64,000 bases of DNA. Origin: Rebecca billardiae RCC1528 (lineage: Eukaryota; Protista; Haptophyta). The DNA is taken from assembly GCA_965240325.2 (NCBI GenBank), contig OZ251244.1, forward strand, positions 372,001-436,000, given 5' to 3'. The notes beneath the pieces are model-generated. The model had not been told where the DNA came from. It ran no database searches and was given only the letters and a program-made list of their open reading frames with translations. The position numbers and the translations under genes are program-made. The first letter of the stretch is position 1. Every line of letters begins with the position of its first letter. Shown piece by piece: positions 15,894 to 60,026 of the stretch.

Positions 15894-16792
15894 ATTGACA
15901 CTGCGCCACAAGGGGGGGTTCCAAAATTGTCCCCGCCGACGGCTCGATGGCTGCCGCACGTGCGTGCCCCGCGTGCCTTGCGCGTGTACGTGCACGGTAG
16001 GGCATCCCGACAGCGAGGGCGGGGTGGCGTAGATGGTCTCATGGGAGGTGTGCCCGTGTGCCGGAGACGCTTCGACACCTTGGTGGCGTGCGCACACTTC
16101 TCCTTGCCGCCGCTTGCCTGCTGCAGTGCTCGGCCAGCCGTGTTGAGAGCACGCCTGCGCGTGCATGGCCAATGTCGGGCGGATCGAGCCGTAGTGAGTG
16201 CGCGTGCGGGTACTCCTACCCGATGCGTCTCCCTACCACTGTCGCAAGCCCTCGTGCGCGTCGTGAAGCCTGTCGAATCCAGTCGGGCACATGCCCAACA
16301 TGCTCGCGAACAATGGCCGAGGAATGGCGTCAAATGCGCTATTTGAAAATAAAACTGGCCAGCATGTCGCATACCACCATGATAACGTTGACACGTCGTG
16401 GGTTCGAGTGCACGGCTTAGGGTTGACGTACAAGAGCTACTGCGACAGTGGTAGAGAGACGCATCGGGTAGGAGTACCCGCACGCGCACTCACTACGGCT
16501 CGATCCGCCCGACATTGGCCATGCACGCGCAGGCGTGCTCTCAACACGGCTGGCCGAGCACGCAGCAGGCAAGCGGCGGCAACGAGAGGTGTGGGCACGC
16601 CACCAAGGTGTCGAAGCGTCTCCGGCACACGGGCACACCTCCCATGAGACCATCTACGCCACCCCGCCCTCGCTGTCGGGACGCCCTACCGTGCACGTAC
16701 ACGCGCAAGGCACGCGGGGCACGCACGTGCGGCAGCCATCGAGCCGTCGGCGGGGACAATTTTGGACCCCCCCCTTGTGGCGCAGTGTCAAT
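15894..16792. mobile_element. Foldback/MITE-like element with about 350-bp inverted arms
   Basis: 15894-16246 is a near-identical reverse complement of 16441-16792, around a roughly 194-bp spacer. Confidence 0.8.
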
Positions 16793-25650: not shown

Positions 25651-28600
25651 TCACTTGCTGGCCGGCGCAGCCGCCGCAGCTGCGGGCGAGGCGCGCGGCG
25701 GCGGGGCGAACTCTCGGACCGCGGTCGTCTCACCGTACGTCATCTCGAGCACGAGCCTGAGGTCGTCGCCCGACCCGCGCACGTATCGTCGCCTGCGCAG
25801 GCAGTGGCCGCGGCAGTGCAGCGGCGCGGGCAGCGCGTCAGGTTGCGCGCACGCATGCGCACTCTTCGCGACGCACGGGAGCGCGTGGGCAGCCAGGAGG
25901 CGCGCGCAAGCGCACATGATGAGCGGCTCGAGCGCCTTCTTTGCCGCCTCGTCGGCGGGCGAGACGCTCGTGATGAGCGCGCCTCCCTCATAGTAGGTGC
26001 GCTTGCGCACGCGCACGCCCTCGAGCAGCTCCTCCGCGTCGCCTGCGTGCGCCAATGCGTCGCGCGGCACACACCGCAGCGTGGGCGCCGCGTGAGCCGG
26101 CGCGCCCGGCGTGGTGCGCATGGCGCGGCGCGGCCGCACGGCGGTGCGCGGCGCGCGTCGAGCTGGCTCGCGGCGCGCACCCTCGACGACCAGCTCGACC
26201 TGAGGCGTGAGCGGGTTGGCTGAGCCGCGCGTCTCGACGCGCCAGCCGGTCTCGCCGTACGGCCGCCACGTCTGCTCGGGCTTGGTCTGCAGCGCCGCGC
26301 GCCGCTTGGCCCAGCTCACACCCATCGCCGCGAGGTACTCGTCAAAGTTGGACGAGCCGACTAGCACCCACACGCCCGCAAAGTCTGCGCGCGCGTCCGC
26401 GCCGCCGAGTGCGCGCTCGCGCTCCGCGCGGCTTCGCGTGTACACCCGCCCGGTCTTCGGAGTGGGCGAGCCCTGGGGGTCCGGCGTCTTGGGCTCCGCC
26501 AGGTCCGTGACGGGCAGCGACGCCGCCGCGCCCGCGCTGCCGCCACCAAACGCCTTGTCGAGCTCGATCTCCCTCTCCGACTTGCGGCGCACGTACTCGC
26601 GCCCAGTCTTTGGCGTGCGCCCGCCCTTGGGGTCCGGGACCTTGGGCACCTCCAGGTCCGAGACGGGCAGCGACGCCGCCTCTTTGCGCTCGCGCTCCGC
26701 GCGGCTTCGCGTATACTCGCGCCCAGTCTTTGGCGTGCGCCCGCCCTTGGGGTCCGGGGACTTGGGCACCGCCAGGTCCGTGACGGGCAGCGACGCCGCC
26801 GCGCCCGCGCCGCCACCGCCAAACGCCGCGTCGTGCTCGGTCTCCCTCTCCGACTTGCGGCGCACGTACTCGCGCCCGGTCTTTGGGGTGCGCCCGCCCT
26901 TGGGGTCCGGGACCTTGGGCACCTCCAGGTCCGAGACGGGCAGCGACGCCGCCTCTTTGCGCTCGCGCTCCGCGCGGCTTCGCGTGTACTCGCGCCCAGT
27001 CTTTGGCGTGCGCCCGCCCTTGGGGTCCGGGACCTTGGGCACCTCGAGGTCCGAGACGGGCAGCGACGCCGCCGCCGCGTGCGCACCGCCCGGCCCGGGC
27101 GACGGGGGCACACTCTCCGAGCCGTCGGCGATCGAGGGCAGCGACTCGCGAGACACCGTCCCGGTGTGCGTCCGAGACTTGAGCGGCGGGCTGTGCGCGC
27201 CCGGCGCGACCGAGCCGACGCCGGCGTCGTCTGTGATGGCGAGCGGCGCGGCCGCAGCGGCGGCGCCCGCGCCCGCGCCGTGCGTCGGGGCGGGCCCAGC
27301 GTACCGGTGGAAGATGCGCGTGCAGCTGTGCACGCGAGAATCGATCTCGGCGTCTATCTGCACCACGAGCTCGCTCGCGCCGTCTGCGCCGCGCTGCACC
27401 GTGCGGCTCAGCGTGAGGTCGGACGCAAGAAGCCCGTGCGCCGACGCGTCGGGCACGTGCGCGCGCGTGACGAGCGCGCCCTTCTCCCAGCCGCTGCGCT
27501 TCGTCAGGTGCACGCCGTCCACCTCGTCGCTCAGCGTCCGGTCTGGCCGCGGCGGCGGCGGCGGCGGCGGCCGCACGCGTGGCGGGCGCGGGCTCGTGAG
27601 CGCGGCGCGGGCGGCGGCGCAGTGCTCTGCCGGCCTGCGGCGCGCGCCGCGTATCGTCCGCGCTCGCGGGCCTCGCCTGGCGCGCGCGCCGCGCACGCAC
27701 CGACGGCAAGGTGCTCCGTCTTGGGCCCGTGCGGCGTGTCGACTGTGAACGTCCACTCGCCCGACGGCAGCCGCTCCCAAGCCTGCACCGAGCGGTGCGA
27801 GGCGGCGAGCTTGCGCTTGAGCGGGCCGACGCCGAGCGCGCGGAGAAACTCGTCCTGCCCGCGCGAGCTGCTCAGCTGCCAGCTGCCCCGGAAGTCGCCC
27901 GCGCCGCCGCCGTCCGAGCCGTCCGCGCCCGTCGGCCCGGCAGTGGACTTGCGCGACGAGAGCTGCAGCGTCGGCAGCGAGGCGACGCCTCTGAACGCGT
28001 CGCTCGCCTTGTGTCGCTCCACCTCCGAGGGCGTCATGATGTGCACGAGCACCTGCGCCGATGCGCGGGAGGCGCACGGCGCGCGCGCAGAGGGCGCGGT
28101 CGCAGAGGCGGCCCGGTGAGCGCGGCAGCCGCAGGGCGCTGTGTGCGCGCGGCGCTCGCGCGAGCCGAGCGCACACCTCGCGCCTCAGCAGCAACTCGCC
28201 GCCGTGCCCGACGACCGCGAATTGATTGGAGAGCTCGCGGCGCCGCTGCCCGAGCGCCTCCGCCCGCTGCTGTCCGAACGAGCCCGCCCCGCCCGCGCCC
28301 GCGCCGCCGCGCGCCGACTCCTCCTCCGCCAGCCCGCCCTCCAGCGCCAGCATGCGCTCGACCAAGTCCTGCCGGACGCGCTCGGCGCGCCGCAGGCTGA
28401 GCTCTTCGTTGAACGCGCGCGGCTCGCGGTTCGCCGTGTGCCCCTCGAGCGAGATGAAGAGCGGCTCGGCGCGGCGGCTCGCGAGCACGCGGTTGCACGC
28501 GCTCAGCGTCGCCGCGAGCTGCTCGAGCACCGGCGCCTCCGCCACCGCGTCGACGTACTCCGCCTCGTCGCCTGCGGGTCAGGGTCAGGGTAGGGTTGGG

Positions 28601-32135: not shown

Positions 32136-33885
32136 ATGATGCGGGGGGGCTCGCCCGGCGAGCCCACGGACGGCCCGTCGCCACCGCCCGGGCCGTTGCG
32201 GCGGGACAGCGAGCCGCCGCGCCGCCCGCCACTCCCGCCGGCGATCCGTCCGCCCGCCAGAGGCCCGGAGGCCAACGGCAGCCACGCGGTGCCTTTGGGC
32301 GTGCGCGCGCTCTCGCATCCGGAGTCGCCTGTCATCTCGCCCGAGGTGCTGCGGGCAGCGCAGCAGCCGCTCAACGGGCCGCACCTGACGATCACGGCGC
32401 CACTCTCGCAGCTGCAGCTCAACCGCTCGGGCTCCGCCTCGCCCTCCGCGACGCTCCGCCCACCCGGCTTCGACGAATCCCCGCGCACGAGCGTCGCGTC
32501 GGGCTCGCAAGGCGGCTCGTACTATGGCGCCGACTCTCCGACGTACCGGCCGATCCAGCCGTACGACTGGGCGTCGCCAGCCGGCTCGGCCCGATCGTAC
32601 CCGCCCTCCGGCCCGCCCTCGGGCCCGCCCTCCGGCCCGCCCTCGGGCCCGCCCTCGCGCATCCCCACGCAGCGCTCCATCGAGGAGTTCACGTCAGAGC
32701 CGGGGCAGCAGTTCGCGCCGCGCTCGCCGGCGCACAGGCGACCGCCGTACGACGACGGCGGCGAGGTCGTCATAGATATCAGCCCGACGTACAACCCGTA
32801 CATCAACCACTTCGCCAGGTGCGCGCGCTGCGGCGCGTTTGTGCGCGCCCGCACCCGCCTCCTCACGCGCTCTCGGCCGCCCGCCCGCCCGCGCTGTCGC
32901 CCGCGCGCCGCCGCGCAGCCCCGCGCCAAACGACGGTCGCGTGGTGCGCTGCACCGTGGTGCGCACGCGTGGCAAGAAGAAGCAGGTCACGTACCGCCTC
33001 CTCACCGAGAGCGGCGACGAGCTGCTCACCGCCGTGCGCAAGTACGACGACTTCGCCATCGGCATGACGTCGTCAGAGAGCCTCATCGGCAGCGTCGACC
33101 GGAGCGCGGGTACGCCGGGCGGCGGCGGCAGCAGCGGCGGACATCCGGACTACAAGAAGTGGCAGAAGCAGTGCTTCTCGCTGCTGCGCTGCCCCGCCGA
33201 CGACGCCGAGTCGCGCGTCTACCTCGCGTACAACGCCGCGCACAACGGCAAGGAGCTCGCGCCGACAGGCGAGCCTCTGATGGCCCTCACGCACGGCACG
33301 CTGGTCGCGTCGATGCATCTGCCCCAGGTGAACACGATGCGCGTCGCTTTCCCCGACCCGGATGCGGGCTCGCCGCTGTGCAGCGCGAGCTACCTCACCG
33401 CGTCGCTGCACAGCATGGAGGAGGCCGAAGCCGAGGCGGCGGGCGACGTCGGCGGCTCGGGCAGCCGCGCGAGCACGCCGCCCTCCGACAGCCGGCGCGG
33501 CAGGCGGCCGCACTCGGTCGGCAACTTGCAGCAGGCGGTGGCCGGTGGGCTGGTCCTGCTCGAGAGCAGGGTACCCGTGTGGAACCAGCGGACCGAGTCG
33601 TACGTGCTCAACTTCCACGGGCGCGCGACGCTCGCCTCGTCCAAAAACCTGCAGCTCACGCCGTGGAAGCTCACGGAGACGCCGCTGCCCTCGCCGGCGC
33701 TCAGCGCGCACGACGAGGGCGAGGGCGACGGCAGCGCGTCGCGCCGCGCGCCCGGCCGCAGCGGCAACCGGATGCCCACGCTGCTGTATGGCAAGGTGGA
33801 CAAAGACACGTACAACCTCGACTACCAGTACCCGCTCTCGCCGTACCACGCGTTCCTCATCGCCGTCTCGGTCGCGGATTGGTGA
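32136..33885 (+). CDS. Tubby-like protein. Intron 32819-32918
   Basis: PAP..G.VVRC, PVWNQRTESYVLNFHGRATLASSKNLQL and YNLDYQYPLSPYHAF match the tubby C-terminal domain. Confidence 0.9.
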
Positions 33886-35061
33886 CGCTGGTGACGTACG
33901 GTCTAATGCAGGACGCAGGAGTGACCCGGACCGCAGATTGGCCCGCCTTAGTTGCCCCTTAAACTTTAAAGGCCCCTACTTAGGCTTATTAGTAACGCGG
34001 CGCCGCCGCAATAATAAATACAATATGTATACTAGTTATTAATCAAGAATTACCCGACTCCCTGGAGGGCGAGGGCGGCTTAATATAGACTATATAGTTA
34101 ATAATATATATATAGTTAATATATATATTAACTATAGTCAATCCGATCTAGCGAAGCTGAACGGCGCGGCTCGTATTGGGTTTTCGACGGAATCTTACCT
34201 GTAAAGAGTGTTTCCAATAGTGTCCGCCACGCCGCCAATAGTGTCCGCCACGCCGCCGCCGTGAAGAAGGTAAGCGGCGCTTACCTTCTTCACGGCGGCG
34301 GCGTGGCGGACACTATTGGAAACACTCTTTACAGGTAAGATTCCGTCGGAAACCCAATACGAGCCGCGCCGTTCTCCTTATACCTTCTTCACGGCGGCGG
34401 CGTGGCGGACACTATTGGAAACACGCTTCACAGGTAAGATTCCGTCGGAAACCCATACCAGCCGCGCCGTTTGCGGCCTACCGGAAAGTATTCACAGCCG
34501 CTCAGAAGTCCTAGTCTCAAAAATGACCCGAAGCCCCAGAAGGCGCCGCGTGAATAGTGCAATGCGACCAGGTGGGTACAGCTCTTCTTAAGGGAAACGG
34601 TTCGGTGCTCGCCGTCTCGCCTTAAGTCGAAATGTCCGAATCCCGGTGGCTGAAAATCCACCAGGTACCCGACTCCCTGGAGGGCGAGGGCGGCTTAATA
34701 TAGTTAATATATATAGTTAATATATATATTAACTATAGTCAATCCGATCTAGCGAGACACGTACAACCTCGACTACCAGTACCCGCTCTCGCCGTACCAC
34801 GCGTTCCTCATCGCCGTCTCGGTCGCGGATTGGTGACGCTGGTGACGCACGGTCTAATGCAGGACGCAGGAGTGACCCGGACCGCAGATTGGCCCGCCTT
34901 AGTTGCCCCTTAAACTTTAAAGGCCCCTACTTAGGCTTATTAGTAACGCGGCCGCCGCAATAATAAATACAATATGTATACTAGTTATTAATCAAGAATT
35001 ACCCGACTCCCTGGAGGGCGAGGGCGGCTTAATATAGACTATAGTTAATAATAATATATAT

Positions 35062-38000
35062 TATTGGGATTACCGCAAGCTCCGAGCGTCTCGAGCCCTG
35101 CTAAAAGCTCACCGCGCACGACAGGACGGACGCCACCGCGAGGATCACATGCCTCGCGATCTCATCAGCTCTCAAGCCTCTGAACCTGGCCCTTATTTCC
35201 GGCGCTCTTGCGCCGGGCCAAAACAGCGATCGAGCTCCGATCGCTCCTGGGCTCGGGGCGGTAGTATCATCGCCGTGCCGACTTACCCAGATTTTGCCGC
35301 GATCAGCCAATCGGCGATCGCACCGTCCGTCCTGTTGCCGCTCAACTTTGTACCACTGCTTCTCGTCCATGTCCGGTGCTGCTCACCTGCTTTCCTTGGA
35401 CAAATCCAGTGTACCAGCATGACGCCCGCGCTGCTCCGCGCTGCTCCGCGCTGCTCCGCGCTGCTCCGCGCTGCTCCGCGCTGCTCCGCGCGCTCCGCGC
35501 TGCTCCGCGCTGCTCCGCGCTGCTCCGCGCTGCTCCGCGCTGCTCCGCGCTGCTCCGCGCTGCTCCGCGCTGCTCCGCGCTGCTCCGCGCTGCTCCGCGC
35601 TGCTCCGCGCTGCTCCGCGCGCCCCGCGCTGCTCCGCGCTCCCGCGCCGCTGCGCCCGCGCTGCTCCGCGCTCGCGCGTCTGCTGCCGCGCGCGTCCTGG
35701 ACGCGCGCGCTGCCAGCCACTGCTCCGCAGCAGCTGCTGCCGCCGGCCCGCCTGATGCGGCGCCAGCCCTGACACCCCAGCGGCAACGCCATCTGCTGAG
35801 ATGCGTGCCCCAGACTGTGCCAGTTCATCCGCACTGCTGCTCTGCAGCAGCTGCGCCGCCGGTCTGCCTGCTGCAGCACCGGCCCTGACTCACCGCCGGC
35901 GACGCCATCTGCTGAGATGCGCGCCCCTGGCCTCGTCAGCTCAACACCCCCCCTCGACAGCCATAGCCGCGAGCGAGTAGCACCGCTCATCGCGCGCGCG
36001 TCGGGTGTCGCACACCATGATGGCGTCGACGTGCCACTCAAACGTAGCAGCGTCGTCCGTCGCCTTCGTCATGATGTCGGCGTGGTACATTGACCTCACG
36101 CCACGTACTCCGCCTCCGTCGAGCTCAGCTGGGCCATAACCTGCAGCCCGCTGCTGTGCCACGACACCGGCGATCCATTGTAGAAGACAATGATGCAGCC
36201 ACCCGTCGACCTCCACCCGGATTCCCCTGGGTTGTTAGACCAAACAGAGTCACCCAAAGTGAGCAAGTCGTCGAGCTCGTCAATCTCCGCGCGCTGGACC
36301 AACGCCTTGTCCGCGTCGGTCAGCCTCGCGCGCGCCGCTGCCTCTGGCAGCCGTATCCGCGTGCTCGCGTTCGTGCCGAATCGCTCGAGCCCGCCATCGA
36401 TCGCCTCTGCGACCCGCGGCAACCCGCCCGCATCTGCGCGGCGGTCCCGCGCCAAAGTTGCGCCGGTGGTATCTCATACCACCAGTGCGACTGCGCCCAT
36501 GGCGCGCCCGCACCGCCCCGATCGCCGGCCTGCGGCATCGGCGGCTGTGCGCCCGTGCGCCCGCGCTGCTGCGCCCGCGCTGACCCGCGCCCGCGCTGCT
36601 GCGCCCGCGCACCTGTGCTACGCGGCGACCCGCCAGCATCTGCTGCGGCCCCGCGCCGGGATTCCGTCGGCGGGATCCGACCCTGCCGACCCAGGCTGTG
36701 TCGCTGACGCGCCTGCTCCGCCACGCCCGCCCTGCGGCGTCGGCGTCGACGGCTGTGCGCACGCGCTGCTGCGCCCGCGCGCTGTTCCGCGCCTGCGCTG
36801 CCGCGCCCGTGCGCTGTTCCGCACCTGCGCTGCCGCGCCTGCGCGCTCCGCGCCCGCGCTGCTGCGCTCGCGCGCTGTTCCGCGCCCGCGCTGCTGCGCC
36901 CGCGCGCTGTTCCGCGCCCGCGCTGCCGCGCCCGCGCGCTGTTCCGCGTCCGCGCTGCCGCGCTCGCGCGCCGACGCCGACGCATCTGCGTCGCCGTCGT
37001 TCCTGACGTCGAACTCCGTCGCGTCGTCGTCACCGGCGTCGGCCGGCGGCTCGCCGCCGTCGCCGTCATCGTCCTGCGCCGCGCGGCGGCCCGCCAGCAT
37101 CTGCTGCGGCCCCGCGCCGTGATTCCGCCGGCGGTATCTGACCCTGCCGACCCGGCTGCGTCATCGACGCGCCTGTCCCGCCACGCCCGCCCTGCGGCGT
37201 CGGCGTCGACGGCTGTGCGCCCGCGCTGCTGCACCCGCGCTGTCCCGCGTCCACGCTGCTGCGCCCGCGCCCCGACGTTGACGCATCTGCGTCGTCGTCG
37301 TACCCGACGTCGAACTCTGTCGCGTCGTCATTCCCGGCGTCGGCTGGCTGCTCGCCGCAGTCGCCGTCATCCGCGCCCGCGCTGCTGCACCCGCGCTGTC
37401 CCGCGTCCACGCTGCTGCGCCCGCGCCCCGACGTTGACGCATCTGCGTCGTCGTCGTACCCGACGTCGAACTCTGTCGCGTCGTCATTCCCGGCGTCGGC
37501 TGGCTGCTCGCCGCCGTCGCCGTCCTCGTCCTCACCGTCGGCGTCACCGCCGACTGGACGATGTCCGCCGCTTACCGCGGCGCCGTCACCATCACCCACG
37601 TACGCGCCACCGTCAGGTGCGCCCAGCGACGAGTGCCCCCCCTCGACCAGGTCGGTCTCGTCGATGCGTACGTCACGCAAGTGAAGAGACGTCCGTCGTC
37701 TACACGACATACGTACCAGAGTACGTTGAAGCCACGGAGCTGCTCCGCGCGCGGCGCGCGCTGATCGCCGCCGCCGCTGCCTCCTCCGCCCTCGCAGCCA
37801 GTCGGTATCTCTCCGCCGTCTTGGCCGCCGCCACGATCCCCGCCGTCGCCACCGCCGCCTGAGCCAGGCGATGAGCTTCGTGCGTGGACGTGTGGGTGCC
37901 GCCGCCACCACCGGGCGTACGACCACCTGGTTCGGTGCGCCCAGCGCCGCCGAGCCACTGCCGCGCGCTGCTGCGCGCACACACGCCGCACCGGCGTCCT

Positions 38001-39949
38001 GCGCCGTGCGTGTGCTTCCGACGCCTCAGCGTCGGGTCCCCACCTGCCGCCGAATGATCTCGGCCCGCAGCATGGAATCGAGCTGAACCTCCCGGCGTGG
38101 GCCGAGTGCCATGCACTGCCCCGCCGTCACCCCGCACTCGCGCCTTGCGCGCGCGCGGATACCGCGACTCAAAGATCGCGCCAGCGCCGCCGTCTCGGCG
38201 GCACTGCCAGCTGCGCCTCGCGTCAGCTGCAGACGTAGTCTCGGCACCGCTGCGCCGCCCCGTCATGATCCCGCGCTCGCGCCTCGCGCGCGCGCGATTC
38301 CCGCGACTCAACAGTCGCGCCAGCGCCGCCATCTCGGTGGCACTGCCAGCTGCGCCTCGCGTCAGCTGCCGGCGTAGGACCAGTGCCAAGCACTGCCCGC
38401 CGCCGTAACGGCGCTCGTGTCGCCAGATTCCACCCGGACGATTCCGATAGATCCGGGTGTGCCAACCGCCGGACCTGTGTCCAGTCCGGTCGTGCCAGCC
38501 GTGCCAGCCGGACCGCAAAACCCAGTCCAGCTGCCAGCCGCCATCCGGTGCCCTAGACCACCGGACAGGTTGATGAGCCAGCCCCTCCGAGTAGATCGCC
38601 GAGCCCGCCGTCGCCGCCGTCAGCTGCCGTGCAGCCACCCGGCGCTCGGGGTGCGTGCTCGCGCCGATCGTGCCAGTAGCGCTGCTCAGTCATCCGCCGC
38701 TGCACGCAGTAGTTCTCCTGCACCAGCTGCATCCGCTCAGATCCAATCGTGAGCTTCCGGGAGGCTGTCGTGTCGGGCTCATCACCGACAGGTACTGTTC
38801 CTCCCAATCGACGCGAAGTTCCGCGTCCGGGCCATGCGCGGAGATGATGCCGATGATCCCTGGCATCGTAGCGCCATGCCCCATCGAGAGCGTCGCCAGT
38901 TTGCCCGCGCTCTCGGCCAGGAACCTCTGCTGCATTCCATGCGACGCCAGAGTTCCTCGTTCCGCCCATCCTGCAACCGCGGCCGCTCGTGCCCATCAGC
39001 CCAATCGATGAGAAAGGACAGTGCGGACAACTCCCTCCCTGGGGTTGCTGCGCGCATATTGGGATTACCGCAAGCTCCGAGCGTCTCGAGCCCTGCTAAA
39101 AGCTCACCGCGCACGACAGGACGGACGCCACCGCGAGGATCACATGCCTCGCGATCTCATCAGCTCTCAAGCCTCTGAACCTGGCCCTTATTTCCGGCGC
39201 TCTTGCGCCGGGCCAAAACAGCGATCGAGCTCCGATCGCTCCTGGGCTCGGGGCGGTAGTATCATCGCCGTGCCGACTTACCCAGATTTTGCCGCGATCA
39301 GCCAATCGGCGATCGCACCGTCCGTCCTGTTGCCGCTCAACTTTGTACCACTGCTTCTCGTCCATGTCCGGTGCTGCTCACCTGCTTTCCTTGGACAAAT
39401 CCAGTGTACCAGCATGACGCCCGCGCTGCTCCGCGCTGCTCCGCGCTGCTCCGCGCTGCTCCGCGCTGCTCCGCGCTGCTCCGCGCGCTCCGCGCTGCTC
39501 CGCGCTGCTCCGCGCTGCTCCGCGCTGCTCCGCGCTGCTCCGCGCTGCTCCGCGCTGCTCCGCGCTGCTCCGCGCTGCTCCGCGCTGCTCCGCGCTGGCG
39601 CGCTGCTCCGCGCTGCTCCGCGCGCCCCGCGCTGCTCCGCGCTCCCGCGCCGCTGCGCCCGCGCTGCTCCGCGCTCGCGCGTCTGCTGCCGCGCGCGTCC
39701 TGGACGCGCGCGCTGCCAGCCACTGCTCCGCAGCAGCTGCTGCCGCCGGCCCGCCTGATGCGGCGCCAGCCCTGACACCCCAGCGGCAACGCCATCTGCT
39801 GAGATGCGTGCCCCAGACTGTGCCAGTTCATCCGCACTGCTGCTCTGCAGCAGCTGCGCCGCCGGTCTGCCTGCTGCAGCACCGGCCCTGACTCACCGCC
39901 GGCGACGCCATCTGCTGAGATGCGCGCCCCTGGCCTCGTCAGCTCAACA
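35062..39949 (-). mobile_element. Internally deleted, non-autonomous Ty1/copia LTR retrotransposon
   Basis: Near-identical LTRs at 35062-35946 and 39057-39949 (TGTTG...CAATA on minus). Polypurine tract GAGGGGGGG abuts the 3' LTR. 5-bp TSD TATAT. RNase H remnants RSTGG...PVSW...LSSTEAEYVA and ADIMTKA, plus an RDVRIDE remnant. Confidence 0.9.
35426..35640. repeat. (CTGCTCCGCG)n 10-bp minisatellite within the LTR (second copy at about 39421-39645)
   Basis: Directly visible. Confidence 0.95.
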
Positions 39950-42082
39950 TATATATAGTTAATATATATATTAACTATAGTCAATCCGATCTAGCGAAGC
40001 TGAACGGCGCGGCTCGTAGTCGTATTGGGTTTTCGACGGAATCTTACCTGTAAAGAGTGTTTCCAATAGTGTCCGCCACGCCGCCAACAGTGTCCGCCAC
40101 GCCGCCGCCGTGAAGAAGGTAAGCGGAGCTTACCTTCTTCACGGCGGCGGCGTGGCGGACACTATTGGAAACACTCTTTACAGGTAAGATTCCGTCGGAA
40201 ACCCAATACGAGCCGCGCCGTTCTCCTTATACCTTCTTCACGGCGGCGGCGTGGCGGACACTATTGGAAACACGCTTCACAGGTAAGATTCCGTCGGAAA
40301 CCCATACCAGCCGCGCCGTTTACGGCCTACCGGAAAGTATTCACAGCCGCTCAGAAGTCCTAGTCTCAAAAATGACCCGAAGCCCCAGAAGGCGCCGCGT
40401 GAATAGTGCAATGCGACCAGGTGGGTACAGCTCTTCTTAAGGGAAACGGTTCGGTGCTCGCCGTCTCGCCTTAAGTCGAAATGTCCGAATCCCGGTGGCT
40501 GAAAATCCACCAGGTACCCGACTCCCTGGAGGGCGAGGGCGGCTTAATATAGTTAATATATATATAGTTAATATATATATTAACTATAGTCAATCCGATC
40601 TAGCGAGACACGTACAACCTCGACTACCAGTACCCGCTCTCGCCGTACCACGCGTTCCTCATCGCCGTCTCGGTCGCGGATTGGTGACGCTGGTGACGCA
40701 CGGTCTAATGCAGGACGCAGGAGTGACCCGGACCGCAGATTGGCCCGCCTTAGTTGCCCCTTAAACTTTAAAGGCCCCTACTTAGGCTTATTAGTAACGC
40801 GGCCGCCGCAATAATAAATACAATATGTATACTAGTTATTAATCAAGAATTACCCGACTCCCTGGAGGGCGAGGGCGGCTTAATATAGACTATAGTTAAT
40901 AATAATATATATATAGTTAATATATATATTAACTATAGTCAATCCGATCTAGCGAAGCTGAACGGCGCGGCTCGTAGTCGTATTGGGTTTTCGACGGAAT
41001 CTTACCTGTAAAGAGTGTTTCCAATAGTGTCCGCCACGCCGCCAACAGTGTCCGCCACGCCGCCGCCGTGAAGAAGGTAAGCGGAGCTTACCTTCTTCAC
41101 GGCGGCGGCGTGGCGGACACTATTGGAAACACTCTTTACAGGTAAGATTCCGTCGGAAACCCAATACGAGCCGCGCCGTTCTCCTTATACCTTCTTCACG
41201 GCGGCGGCGTGGCGGACACTATTGGAAACACGCTTCACAGGTAAGATTCCGTCGGAAACCCATACCAGCCGCGCCGTTTGCGGCCTACCGGAAAGTATTC
41301 ACAGCCGCTCAGAAGTCCTAGTCTCAAAAATGACCCGAAGCCCCAGAAGGCGCCGCGTGAATAGTGCAATGCGACCAGGTGGGTACAGCTCTTCTTAAGG
41401 GAAACGGTTCGGTGCTCGCCGTCTCGCCTTAAGTCGAAATGTCCGAATCCCGGTGGCTGAAAATCCACCAGGTACCCGACTCCCTGGAGGGCGAGGGCGG
41501 CTTAATATAGTTAATATATATATATATATATATAGTTAATATATATATTAACTATAGTCAATCCGATCTAGCGAGACACGTACAACCTCGACTACCAGTA
41601 CCCGCTCTCGCCGTACCACGCGTTCCTCATCGCCGTCTCGGTCGCGGATTGGTGACGCTGGTGACGTACGGTCTAATGCAGGACGCAGGAGTGACCCGCG
41701 GACCGCAGATTGGCCCGCCTTAGTTGCCCCTTAAACTTTAAAGGCCCCTACTTAGGCTTATTAGTAACGCGGCCGCCGCAATAATAAATACAATATGTAT
41801 ACTAGTTATTTCAAGAATGACCCGACTCCCTGGAGGGCGAGGGCGGCTTAATATATACTATATATATAGTTAATAATATATATAGTTAATATATATATAT
41901 TAACTATAGTCAATCCGATCTAGCGTGACTCTGAAGCCGCCGCATCACACTCACTGTCACACTGCATAACTCCGGGGCCACCGTCGGCTGCCAGCCTGAC
42001 TGAGCGGCCTGCGAGCCCGGTGCCAGCAAGGGTCACGCCGTCCGCGGAATTCAGCACTCGGGCTCGCTGTGCGTCTGGGATG

Positions 42083-42544
42083 TCACGCGTTGCTTGGTGC
42101 TCGCTCATCGCCAGTGCCAGACTTCGCAACCGATCCTGCCCGCGAGCTCCCACGAGACCTCGCACTCGCGGCCCCACTCTTGCCTTTCATCGCATCCCGC
42201 TGGCGCTTGATGTCCTCGCGTGCTGCGCGCTCGGCCTCGATGCTTGCTCGGAGCTGCTTCTCGTAATCTTTCAGCAACTGCACCTCGGGCTTCGCTTTAT
42301 CAGCTGACTGCTTCTGCATCACAATCGGCGCGTCGTCACGCAGCAGGTTCGCCGTGGGCTGCCCGTACAGGCCGACGTCGATCGTCGGCCGCCTCGGGTT
42401 GAGGTACGTCCCGCCCGCCTTCCACGCCTCGTGCGCCACGTCCTCGCGCACCATCATCTCCTTGAGGAAGGAGGAGTTGCGGTTGTTGTACGGGATGTGC
42501 GCGACGCCCGGGTAGTACCGGTTGACGTGCTCCTGCGGGTCCAT
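42083..42544 (-). CDS. Hypothetical protein (153 aa) with C-terminal coiled coil
   Basis: ATG-initiated ORF with strong GC3 codon bias and non-repetitive composition (MDPQEHVNRYYPG...). Confidence 0.65.
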   Translation of the reverse strand: MDPQEHVNRYYPGVAHIPYNNRNSSFLKEMMVREDVAHEAWKAGGTYLNPRRPTIDVGLYGQPTANLLRDDAPIVMQKQSADKAKPEVQLLKDYEKQLRASIEAERAAREDIKRQRDAMKGKSGAASARSRGSSRAGSVAKSGTGDERAPSNA

Positions 42545-43819
42545 TGGCCCGTCACGCGGTGCGTCGAGCGCCGCTAACTGGCCGCGCCCGAGGGCGATGG
42601 GGTGAACCTGGCTGTCGAAACGACAGCCGGACCCGAAGAAACCGTCAGAAAGAAAAGAAATCGTCGCCCGCCGGCCGCCGCGTCTCCGCGAAAATGGAAA
42701 AATCATCGGGAGCGTTCTTTATTTAGCACCAACAGTCCAACTCCGCCAAGGCGCCAACAGCTCGACGGGTGAGGGGGCACATGCACGACGCTACCCTAGC
42801 CTTTCGTTCGATCTGGACAGTAGCTGACCCGTGATAGACGACTGCAAGCCCACGAAGGCAGCAGTCGTGTGATTGTGGAACATGTTCACTGCGAGTGCGA
42901 CGCGGCGCGAGTCGGTCCGATTGCATCGGATCGACAACTGAATCCGGCGGCGCGGGCAGTGTCACTCCGCCGAGGCGTTCCACACGGCTAATACGGCCTG
43001 AGAACGCGACGTGCGCCCAGATAAGGAAGTCTGACGAGCAGAGCCAGTCCATTCGGTCGCGTCCGTGCCAGACTATAAGCTGAGTGAGGAGCACGATAAA
43101 ACGGGCCAACTACTACAGTCGAGGAGCTCCGCCCCGGGTCGCCGGCAAGTTGACCGCAGCGTAAGAGTAGGCCTATCTGACTGCCTGCGCGGAGAAATGG
43201 GGGCCTTCGCCGGCTCACACTTGACGCTCATCTCCGCAGTCCGCACCTGGCCTAGTCCGCAAGGCAAGCTTTATTCTCTACGCCCGCCCGAGTGCCCGAG
43301 CCGCCGTTGTTGCCAGATGGACACTGACAACAAATCGGCACCAACGGTGCGGACGTTCCGCCCTGACGAGTGCCAACTGCCAACAAGAGCGGTCACCACC
43401 CGCGTGCAATCGCCGATGCGCAGCACCATGGAGCGGGTCACGCATCCAAGTGCGCGACGAGCCCACGTCGGCGCGGTGGTCACGGGCGGATACAGGTCGT
43501 CGTCGTAAATATGACTGATACTAATACTACGACAATATTTTGAAGACGTCTCGAATGATCCAAACACCGCTTGTAGAGCGATCTGGGCCCAGATTGCTCT
43601 GCAATTGCACCGCATCGCGTACCATCCCCAGCAAAGGAGTACCGGCTTATGCGTGTAAAATGCGATCGAGATTCGATATCGAAAGAGCTTCCATTATTGA
43701 ACGGGCGCGCAACTTGACGACGCGATCTATCAAAAGTGCGCGAAACTTTTACGATAGCTAGTATGCTGGTATCGTCGTTCGGACGTGAGCAGATCCTCGG
43801 TCGCTTCGAGGGTGGGGCG

Positions 43820-58570: not shown

Positions 58571-59958
58571 TGGGTCAATTTTTTGGGCTTCGGCGCACGG
58601 GAGGGCTGGTAGCGCCGATGCCGATGGGCGCCCATGGCGCCCGTCCGCCCCAGTGGCGCTCCACTGTGTCAAACGCGAGCTCCTGCGCTGCCCTACGCGG
58701 ATGCCGTTGGTCGCGCGCTGGTCGAGCGACCTTGGGCACATGACTGCTCCTCGTGGCGCGCGTCTTGACCGTCGACTGAGCGCGCACTCCTGCCCACGAG
58801 CACGCCGCACCGACCGCGTCGCGTCAGTCGAACCGGTGGGCCGCGCAAACATGCGCGTGGGTAGGCATGGGTGAGGTGAGCGCGCTCAAAAGCTTGCTTG
58901 CCTGGAAGGGAAGCTCCGTATCGATGAGTCTCGCACGCGTTTGCCTCGCGTCGAGCCCATCTGGGAGCAGTCACTGCACGCGCAGACACGCGTTGCGAAA
59001 GGATGATCAGCCGGCCACGCGTGCAGAGCAAAGCAGATGACTGCCCGTGCGTCAAACCGCATCAGGCGGGTATCCGACGCTGCGCAGCATGCGAGCCGTA
59101 CCCAGGCGCGATTGCACAGCCAGCAGGCGCCGCTCCCAACGCCGTCACAGAGCGTACGCACCGCCTGTTGTCATCCTCGTGGATTGCTCGGAGCCGACGA
59201 TCGCCGCACGCGGATAGCAAATAAGCTGTGGCCAACGTTTGAAGCCAGTAACGATGCCGAGCTGCGCTGTGCGTGTGTAGTCTGGGTCGATCGCGTGCGC
59301 GCCACAGCTACGGCACGCACCCCAACTCCACTGTGGGCCCATGCTGCGTGCGTACCAACCAGCAGTCAAAAACACACCGCCGAGCACCGTCGACACGTTG
59401 ACCGTGCACACACTCAAGGCGAGTGCGAGCACAGCCGGGTGCAGGTGGCTGGCCGTGACAGCTGGGGAGAGCGCTGCGCCATGCTAGCCGCCGCTCGCCT
59501 CGATGGCCTCGCAGAGGAGCAGCAGCTTCATTTTTCTAAGCTCACCTGCGCGGAGAGCACGTGATGCGTGTAGCGCGCGCAGGTGGGGCGTCATGCGGTT
59601 AGGTCTTCCAGTTCCTGTCACAACATCATCTGAACCATCTCAAACTGCCAAACCTAACCGCATGACGCTTTTTCTCGTCCCGCAACGTGGCGCGCAAGCA
59701 TGCGCAAGAATGCAACATCCAAATGCAATCGCCGCGCGTGCGCGAGGCAGACGCGGAGAGGGGCGTGGCGGCGCGCGAGATGGCGCACCTGGGTGTCCTC
59801 GTCACCGCCGACCAGCGCCAGGGGCCGCGCGCCCTTCGCCCGCGTCGCACGACCGCGGCAGCGCGAGCCCCCGCAAACGCAGCTTTCGCGCGCTTTCACG
59901 ATGGCCGCTCGTTGACGAGATCGGCGCTCCGTGCGCCGAAGCCAAAAAAAGCGACCCA
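58571..59958. mobile_element. Non-autonomous TIR element (about 1.4 kb) inserted in a TA tract
   Basis: Imperfect TIR of about 30 bp, tgggtc..tttttt(g)ggcttcggcgcacgg versus ccgtgcgccgaagccaaaaaaagcgaccca, with (TA)n on both flanks. Confidence 0.7.
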
Positions 59959-60026
59959 TATATATTTATTTATTTATTTGCGCAGCGCGGATCATCTGCT
60001 AACCGAACTACCTCCCAGGATTGTCA

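Follow-up and report, generated by a model that had tools for sequence, protein, structure and literature searches.

At the 3' end of a tubby-like gene of the haptophyte alga Rebecca billardiae RCC1528, the last codons of the gene, a short AT-rich spacer and a truncated transposon are repeated side by side. This array is probably a local and very young segmental rearrangement that began with a foldback DNA transposon and grew by unequal crossing-over. It lies in the spacer of ~0.4 kb that separates two convergent genes of this GC-rich alga, and it was analyzed in a window of 64,000 nucleotides (contig OZ251244.1, positions 372,001 to 436,000), to which all positions below refer. The event is of an ordinary kind and has one curious detail, a breakpoint that was used twice.

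Layout of the array

Once a 4,888-bp LTR-element insertion is subtracted, positions 33804-41925 read as three T-P-E-P units followed by T-P, in which T is the tubby tail, P the spacer (subtypes Pa and Pb), E a truncated copy of the foldback transposon FB, and D the unique DNA downstream. The preliminary description had given the same order; the modules lie where it placed them, but the order holds only after removal of the LTR element, which splits the third P. The features are:

32839..33888, + strand: tubby-like gene, final coding stretch, frame open to the TGA stop (Pfam Tub PF01167, E 8e-29, profile positions 151-255 of 256; tail translation)
33804..34051, + strand: T1, native tubby tail (~27 codons) with ~165 bp of 3' flank, ending at the TA target site
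34052..34153, + strand: Pa1, subtype-a P with the 26-bp AT palindrome at 34111-34136
34154..34666, + strand: E1, right 513 bp of FB (centre and right arm), truncated inside the element on the left, true terminus on the right
34667..34754, + strand: Pb1, subtype-b P with a shorter AT tract
34755..35000, + strand: T2, tubby-tail copy
35001..35061, + strand: left part of Pa2, its final 5 nt (TATAT) being the left target site duplication (TSD) of the LTR insertion
35062..39949, no strand assigned: non-coding LTR element within Pa2, LTRs at 35062-35946 and 39057-39949
39950..39996, + strand: right part of Pa2, opening with the right TSD TATAT
39997..40515, + strand: E2, truncated FB copy
40516..40605, + strand: Pb2
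40606..40851, + strand: T3, without substitutions relative to T2
40852..40954, + strand: Pa3, uninterrupted, which represents the empty site of the LTR element
40955..41473, + strand: E3, truncated FB copy
41474..41573, + strand: Pb3
41574..41819, + strand: T4, outermost tail copy with private changes
41820..41925, + strand: Pa4, final P with a 28-bp palindrome variant, running into unique downstream DNA
41926..42706, - strand: D and the convergent open frame 42083-42706, which has no Pfam match

The units measure 951, 958 (insertion excluded) and 968 bp and are arranged head-to-tail, with the same P-to-T and P-to-E junctions in 3/3 units. Module copies are 97-100% identical across 250-520 bp, far above chance. 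T includes the final 26-27 tubby codons, and Pfam Tub matches the native frame and the isolated 26-aa piece alike. The first copy of the gene is intact and nothing suggests a functional effect of the array on it. D is probably the 3' flank of the convergent frame, and no known RNA family was found within 33-43 kb.

The seven copies of P are 88-106 bp long, and the Pa and Pb subtypes are consistent from unit to unit. Their end points, described at first as nearly fixed, are in fact exactly fixed, with two left and three right partners as reported. The palindrome attributed to every copy is present in its exact 26-bp form in six of them; Pa4 carries a 28-bp version with one extra TA. In the 72-Mb assembly, BLAST and two pattern searches (up to 3 mismatches) revealed no P beyond the seven local copies, the 26-bp palindrome is confined to the array locus, T was not found outside it, and D was not found elsewhere. 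A metagenome scan gave no match to the left end of P. Mapping P across the genome had been proposed from the outset, and its absence elsewhere is the outcome that the preliminary description had itself named as speaking against its reading. P is thus not a dispersed mobile or recombination module, and its restriction to a single locus also rules out P-E-P as a TRIM-like terminal-repeat retroelement.

The LTR element is flanked by the 5-bp TSD TATAT, and Pa3 is the exact empty site of its insertion. Between its direct LTRs (885 and 893 bp) there are 0 substitutions and a single microsatellite indel of 8 bp. In its LTRs, TSD and empty site the insert conforms to an LTR retrotransposon, but it is non-autonomous: none of its eight open reading frames of 91-312 aa gave a Pfam hit, to gag, pol or any other family. 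A clean TSD together with an empty site kept in the sister unit indicates that these units are not one collapsed or duplicated by the assembly. We consider it very improbable that haplotypes with and without the LTR insertion were assembled one after the other, the true array being one unit shorter, even though units 2 and 3 differ only by that insertion, one substitution in E and the lengths of AT tracts, and palindrome-rich DNA is reported to be prone to long-read artefacts (PMC12870357). Private variants in units 1 and 4 imply that T-Pa-E-Pb-T-Pa, at the minimum, is real; contig 14 carries a comparable array of three copies; and the assembly is highly contiguous (41 contigs, 72 Mb), with a region of 8 kb being easily crossed by long reads.

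The foldback transposon and the left end of P

E corresponds to the right 513 bp of FB, a non-coding foldback transposon of ~800 bp that forms a near-perfect palindrome with internal subrepeats of ~99 bp. The few copies of FB are 97-100% identical; contigs 23, 17, 13 and 37 carry full palindromic copies, and contig 14 has another three. In 5/5 full copies a TA adjoins each end, and the outer flanks are unrelated. With its terminal inverted repeats, its 2-bp TA duplication and its independent insertions, the parent of E fits a TA-targeting DNA transposon of the foldback or MITE type. TA-duplicating elements of this type are Stowaway or Tc1-mariner-like, and the Drosophila FB elements are the archetype of foldback transposons. 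Like them, the algal element is non-coding and palindromic, has TA on both sides and exists in few near-identical copies. Its terminus found no match in a metagenome scan and, as far as searched, the family is specific to the host genome.

The three E copies of the window have in common a private 3-nt insertion, which indicates descent from a single FB insertion. Neither an intact FB nor a left FB junction was found at the array locus. It had been proposed that E and P together form the end of a larger element. This is ruled out, because E is a truncated copy of the ~800-bp FB and the other FB copies run via TA straight into unrelated flanks. Capture of a host exon, which had also been suggested, found no support either: T occurs at this locus only, the other FB copies contain neither T nor P, and there is no sign of mobilization. 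Transduplication would place host fragments within copies of an element at sites other than the parent gene, and no such fragments were observed.

The junction from E to P consists of the right terminus of FB, then TA, then P, and it abuts each Pb, whereas the T-to-P junctions read as the matching unoccupied TA site. The seemingly fixed left end of P is therefore the insertion site of FB, and what had been taken for a recombination end point is the TA target of the abutting transposon. No excision footprint was detected at the empty T-to-P sites.

The right end of P

At its right end, 17 nt past the palindrome, P joins FB-internal sequence and the interior of the tubby exon from one identical nucleotide, and three different right partners follow this nucleotide in the array. 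Microhomology was found neither at the P-to-E nor at the P-to-T join, so that replication restart of the MMBIR type fits poorly. Of the idea that P acts as a recombination or replication-switch site, the half concerning the right end survives, since this end was reused by two illegitimate joins; the left end is a TA site. Such reuse suggests a site-specific 3' end on the top strand, arising from a nick or from collapse of a fork or D-loop, 17 nt past the AT palindrome. D as the end of a transposon whose excision fixed the right end of P was considered as well and rejected, because D is unique and has no TA at the boundary.

The 3' terminus of Helitrons is formed by a hairpin located 10-12 nt upstream of a CTRR motif. 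The right end of P looks similar, with the palindrome, 11 nt and CTAG in succession, and it acts as a fixed 3' end, the constant boundary lying 2 nt further on. It is thus conceivable, although we regard it as unlikely, that the adjacent AT palindrome makes the right end of P a site for a specific nick or strand switch (through a hairpin-recognizing HUH nuclease such as Helitron Rep, or as a fixed point of fork collapse), the entire array arising as this 3' end was used again and again, with FB being a bystander that supplied template. One nucleotide joined to three sequences without microhomology speaks for this explanation, and the genome does contain at least five Helitron_like_N matches in uninterrupted frames of 2,600-3,640 aa. 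However, the boundary lies beyond CTAG and not at it, the hairpin of P is pure AT, the A|T insertion context is absent, and P has no other genomic copy. The units begin with AGAC or AAGC and lack both a 5' TC and any further conserved 5' motif; neither multiple copies nor insertion between A and T without a TSD was seen. Moreover, the FB insertion site fully accounts for the left end of P.

Palindromic AT-rich repeats (PATRRs) are known from human translocations, in which the breakpoints lie at the centre of the palindrome. As in PATRRs, a perfect AT-rich palindrome adjoins recurrent illegitimate junctions in the array; unlike in PATRRs, no copy has a broken palindrome and the junction is found 17 nt beyond it. 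A bolder proposal, to which we give rather little credence, is that the perfect AT palindrome between the convergent genes determines where a site-specific 3' end forms, 17 nt downstream of it, by a hairpin-guided nick (perhaps made by an intact Helitron-type Rep protein of this genome) or by fixed collapse of a fork or D-loop, and that this end was used at least two times for illegitimate joins. Two independent joins at one nucleotide of P are not expected from random breakage, and the model set out below needs the added assumption of a site-specific lesion.

Origin and growth of the array

Origin from a foldback insertion would probably have proceeded in five steps. A ~800-bp FB would have inserted at the TA where the tubby 3' flank (T) meets the AT-rich spacer P; the FB-P junction can be read directly, and a whole FB would once have resided at the locus. 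A break at or in FB, caused by transposase excision or by breakage of the palindrome, may then have been repaired illegitimately. This repair would have left the right 513 bp of FB between two spacer copies of ~100 bp, giving P-E-P, and may also have restored the empty TA site on the tubby side. Before or after this step, end-joining without microhomology would have connected the same right end of P to the interior of the tubby exon. The P-to-exon junction is present in the array, and its formation would have given rise to a 0.96-kb unit, T-Pa-E-Pb, with T-Pa after it. Unequal exchange between sister chromatids or homologues would have raised the number to three E and four T copies, as judged from shared variants. 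The last event would be the entry of the non-coding LTR element into the AT tract of one P, an insertion that is directly visible.

The variants record how the array grew. T2 and T3 are 0 substitutions apart and have a derived C in common, E2 and E3 have a 6-bp insertion in common, and T1 and T4 retain the ancestral base and bear private changes. Units 2 and 3 are sisters in this pattern and the outer copies are older. Shared and nested variants, with the inner copies most alike, point to later growth by unequal crossing-over, in agreement with the unequal exchange proposed at the outset. The near-identity of units 2 and 3 would also agree with a 0.96-kb extrachromosomal circle (E-Pb-T-Pa) that multiplied by rolling-circle replication and returned to T-Pa through homology, several units at once, and T-Pa followed by n copies of E-Pb-T-Pa is the form expected from integration of a circle or concatemer. 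We consider this improbable: a circle with both novel junctions needs a pre-existing chromosomal duplication and leaves the origin unexplained, and the derived changes that set units 2 and 3 apart from unit 1 fit stepwise unequal exchange at least equally well. A circular intermediate is not needed for the array.

The second array, on contig 14, comprises three copies with a period of 1,198 bp and starts 25 codons before the stop of a gene. Every unit includes a complete FB flanked by TA duplications, and the outer copy shows an empty site. Each junction bears the first 207 bp of another transposon with terminal inverted repeats (TIRs; at least 16 copies); its terminus lies within a TA tract, and its truncated side has a microhomology of 2 nt. 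Symmetric TIRs of 29-34 nt directly at both ends rule out that this junction filler is a Helitron2-type element. A truncated transposon with an intact terminus at each duplication junction mirrors the P-E-P step proposed for the tubby locus.

Small tandem duplications started by fractured transposons have been documented in maize, in a study of alternative and reversed-ends transposition of Ac/Ds and other hAT elements (Zhang, Zuo and Peterson, 2013; PMC3744419), whose third genomic example consists of 116-118-bp repeats started by 288-bp fractured elements. Both algal arrays resemble these cases in that a broken DNA transposon, of which one terminus is intact, lies where the repeats join (P-E-P and the 207-bp fragment on contig 14), and the repeat starts precisely at a transposon terminus, as the right end of FB with TA abuts each Pb. 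Several features of the tubby array differ. FB is a TA-targeting foldback and not a hAT element, and the truncated side of E joins the right end of P by plain end-joining, with no TA there. The array has no intact partner element and no TSD pair, matching or non-matching; with no intact FB at the locus, the maize pattern of a first element with both TSDs, a middle one with one and a new TSD at the breakpoint is not seen. Its copy number exceeds two, and its P-to-tubby-exon junction involves no transposon end. McGurk and Barbash (2018; PMC5932611) likewise described tandem arrays that begin with transposon insertions and expand by unequal exchange; the dimers in their study contain nothing but element sequence and arise when two insertions hit the same site. 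The amplification of a transposon-containing unit to a short head-to-tail array corresponds to the first stage of satellite birth in that scheme, the difference being that the unit is here mostly host DNA with half an element.

The locus offers a clean, datable snapshot of a short tandem array, possibly a proto-satellite, at its birth from host DNA and a fragmented DNA transposon, in an algal lineage that has received little study. All of its junctions are preserved, together with an empty site and the LTR element that entered later. The breakpoint that was used twice, next to the perfect AT palindrome, is a place to test whether hairpins set strand breaks or template switches in vivo. If the palindrome does set a site-specific 3' end, P would be a natural, sequence-defined hotspot of tandem duplication and, together with the array on contig 14, it would suggest that palindromic elements of this alga repeatedly spawn kilobase arrays starting ~25 codons before the stop of a gene.

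Layout of the array

The window corresponds to positions 372001-436000 of contig 27 in a 72-Mb assembly of 41 contigs and has a GC content of 60-78%. The array sits between two convergent open frames, a tubby-like gene that ends at 33888 (Pfam Tub, E 8e-29) and a second, unnamed frame on the minus strand that ends at 42083. The module map rests on repeat detection, on reading of the sequence itself and on BLAST searches of the window with the modules. T denotes a copy of the tubby-gene tail, P an AT-palindrome spacer of about 100 bp (subtypes Pa and Pb), E a truncated piece of the foldback transposon FB and D the unique DNA 3' of the array.

Module map of the array (window coordinates)
33804-34051: T1
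34052-34153: Pa1
34154-34666: E1
34667-34754: Pb1
34755-35000: T2
35001-35061: Pa2, left part
35062-39949: LTR-flanked insert, 4,888 bp
39950-39996: Pa2, right part
39997-40515: E2
40516-40605: Pb2
40606-40851: T3
40852-40954: Pa3
40955-41473: E3
41474-41573: Pb3
41574-41819: T4
41820-41925: Pa4
from 41926 onward: D, unique DNA

After removal of the 4,888-bp insert, the order T-P-E-P, repeated three times and followed by T-P, holds, and what the preliminary description had observed is confirmed as a whole. The units measure 951, 958 and 968 bp with the insert left out. T begins within the tubby exon, 26-27 codons upstream of the stop, and its isolated coding piece alone still matches the end of the Tub domain in Pfam. 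The suggestion that the array represents host exon capture in progress found no support: T copies occur at this locus only, in a non-coding context, and none is attached to a mobile FB copy.

Elsewhere in the window, self-comparison revealed a 353-bp inverted repeat (16246-15894 / 16441-16792, 98% identity) just upstream of a WD40-TRP gene region. A direct repeat of about 400 bp (26413-27090, 92% identity, offset 273 bp) lies within the calmodulin-OmpA-FABP gene region and probably reflects internal domain repeats of this gene.

The element FB and the two ends of P

E is the right-hand 513 bp of FB, a non-coding, nearly perfect palindromic element of about 800 bp composed of ~99-bp subrepeats and a 183-bp unique arm. 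Full copies are present on contigs 23, 17, 13 and 37, with three more in tandem on contig 14 and decayed pieces on contigs 30, 1, 5 and 7; the arms are 97-100% identical between loci. Both termini of every full copy adjoin TA and then unrelated sequence, as is characteristic of cut-and-paste elements that target TA. A private 3-nt insertion common to all three E copies in the window traces them back to one local copy. On contig 30 (~823-825 kb; L050:1072-2922), a complex local duplication of 205-bp and ~300-bp segments, spaced 722-1,113 bp apart, extends to a TA-rich tract that lies some 400 bp away from a decayed FB arm.

A perfect 26-bp palindrome is present in six of the seven P copies and a 28-bp version in the seventh. 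The end points of P, described earlier as nearly fixed, are constant to the nucleotide across all copies. Searches of the whole assembly with complete P, with the GC-rich 27-mer from its left side, with the 25-mer from its right side and with the palindrome led to this locus only, as did searches with the non-coding part of T and with D, so that P is local spacer DNA and not a dispersed element. In the window, TA and then P come after the right terminus of FB, and the sequence at the T-to-P junctions, ...aat-TA-ccc..., is the unoccupied form of this FB target site. The left boundary of P is therefore the FB insertion point and not a recombination end.

The FB insertion site does not explain the right end. 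P terminates in ...gatctagcg, 17 nt beyond the palindrome, and continues into FB-internal sequence three times, into a point in the tubby exon three times and into D once. D is the native continuation; the other two are distinct illegitimate joins, neither of which displays microhomology with the native sequence preceding the right partner. Regardless of the order of events, one and the same 3' end of the top strand served in at least two joins. Since D is non-repetitive and the boundary lacks a TA, the right end is not accounted for by excision of a transposon. The proposal that P acts as a recombination or replication-switch site is supported by the reuse of the right end but not by the left end or by the single-locus status of P; the preliminary interpretation overall is partly supported.

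As single-stranded DNA, P forms the hairpin predicted for it, with only a modest advantage over shuffled sequences (z -2.2). A rival reading, a hairpin-guided nick at the right end, would account for the reuse of this end, which consists of the palindrome, 11 nt and CTAG. The genome contains at least five Helitron_like_N matches (C39:342498, C7:282420, C13:616682, C23:65118 and C33:783174, four with identical scores), whose uninterrupted frames of 2,600-3,640 aa suggest intact rolling-circle transposase genes. However, the actual boundary lies 2 nt beyond CTAG, and P, confined to one locus in the genome, has neither the 5' motif nor the target between A and T.

Growth of the array and the later LTR insertion

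T2 and T3 differ by no substitution and have a derived C in common, whereas T1 and T4 retain the ancestral T and each carry private indels. Relative to E1, E2 and E3 have a common 6-bp insertion and two substitutions, and E1 agrees with other FB copies at the sites where they differ. The Pa and Pb subtypes are distinguished by AT-tract slippage differences that are consistent across units. This pattern fits two rounds of enlargement of an initial T-Pa-E-Pb-T-Pa through unequal exchange, in which units 2 and 3 arose last. These two units may alternatively be two haplotypes joined in a partial assembly artefact, but the outer units carry private variants, so that the core structure is real. Circle integration can explain the amplification as a source of extra units but leaves the origin unexplained.

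The LTR element (35062-39949) inserted after the array had grown. Over 885 bp its LTRs differ by no substitution and by a single indel, of 8 bp, in a microsatellite. The TSD on either side of the element is TATAT, and Pa3 provides the exact empty site. The element is non-autonomous; a Pfam scan of eight of its ORFs (91-312 aa) gave no match. Its interior is packed with tandem repeats of 10, 14, 16, 32, 156 and 457 bp.

A second array and the origin of the tubby array

A three-copy tandem array with a period of 1,198 bp is found on contig 14 (~1984.0-1987.4 kb; L045:3027-6400). Its unit has three parts: the final 25 codons of an open frame of 498 aa together with 37 bp, a complete FB with TA on both sides, and an 85-bp stretch of downstream DNA that terminates in a TA tract. 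Both junctions hold the first 207 bp of another TIR transposon of about 1.39 kb, with the terminus joined to the TA tract and the truncated end joined to the gene tail via 2-nt microhomology. Behind the last unit this fragment is absent and the TA tract simply continues, which leaves the outer site empty. The arrangement mirrors P-E-P in its duplicated flank, in the transposon fragment with one terminus that sits at the junction and in the unoccupied site on the outside. The ~1.39-kb family is non-coding, with at least 16 copies of 96-99% identity, always in TA-rich sites, and TIRs of 29-34 nt beginning GGGTCGATTTTTTT (e.g. L060:1503-2889); the window contains an end of one copy at ~59753-59959 (-).

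In the best-supported reading of the tubby array, a formerly full FB copy would have inserted at the TA adjoining P and then suffered a break, by excision or palindrome breakage. Repair could have started at the terminus of the sister's element, copied the element partway inward and rejoined out of register. Alternatively, a small tandem duplication could have arisen, one of its breakpoints lying within the element, and the intact copy could have been lost afterwards. Both routes would give P-E-P. A second end-joining, presumably later, of the same right end of P to the tubby exon would have given rise to the 0.96-kb unit, of which unequal exchange would have supplied further copies.

In maize, fractured transposons start tandem repeats of 116-118 bp, attributed to alternative transposition (PMC3744419). 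Another paper describes re-replication and aborted forks that are joined with or without microhomology (PMC4270019). An intact partner element with paired TSDs, one of the features that define the maize model, is missing from the tubby locus, which makes that model the nearest analogue and not a class to which the locus belongs. Events of this kind, in which a transposon seeds a local tandem duplication and unequal exchange expands it, are known, and the locus adds a new example. Worth following up are the breakpoint used twice, 17 nt past a perfect AT palindrome, and the start of both arrays 25-27 codons upstream of a stop codon, which with two cases could well be chance.
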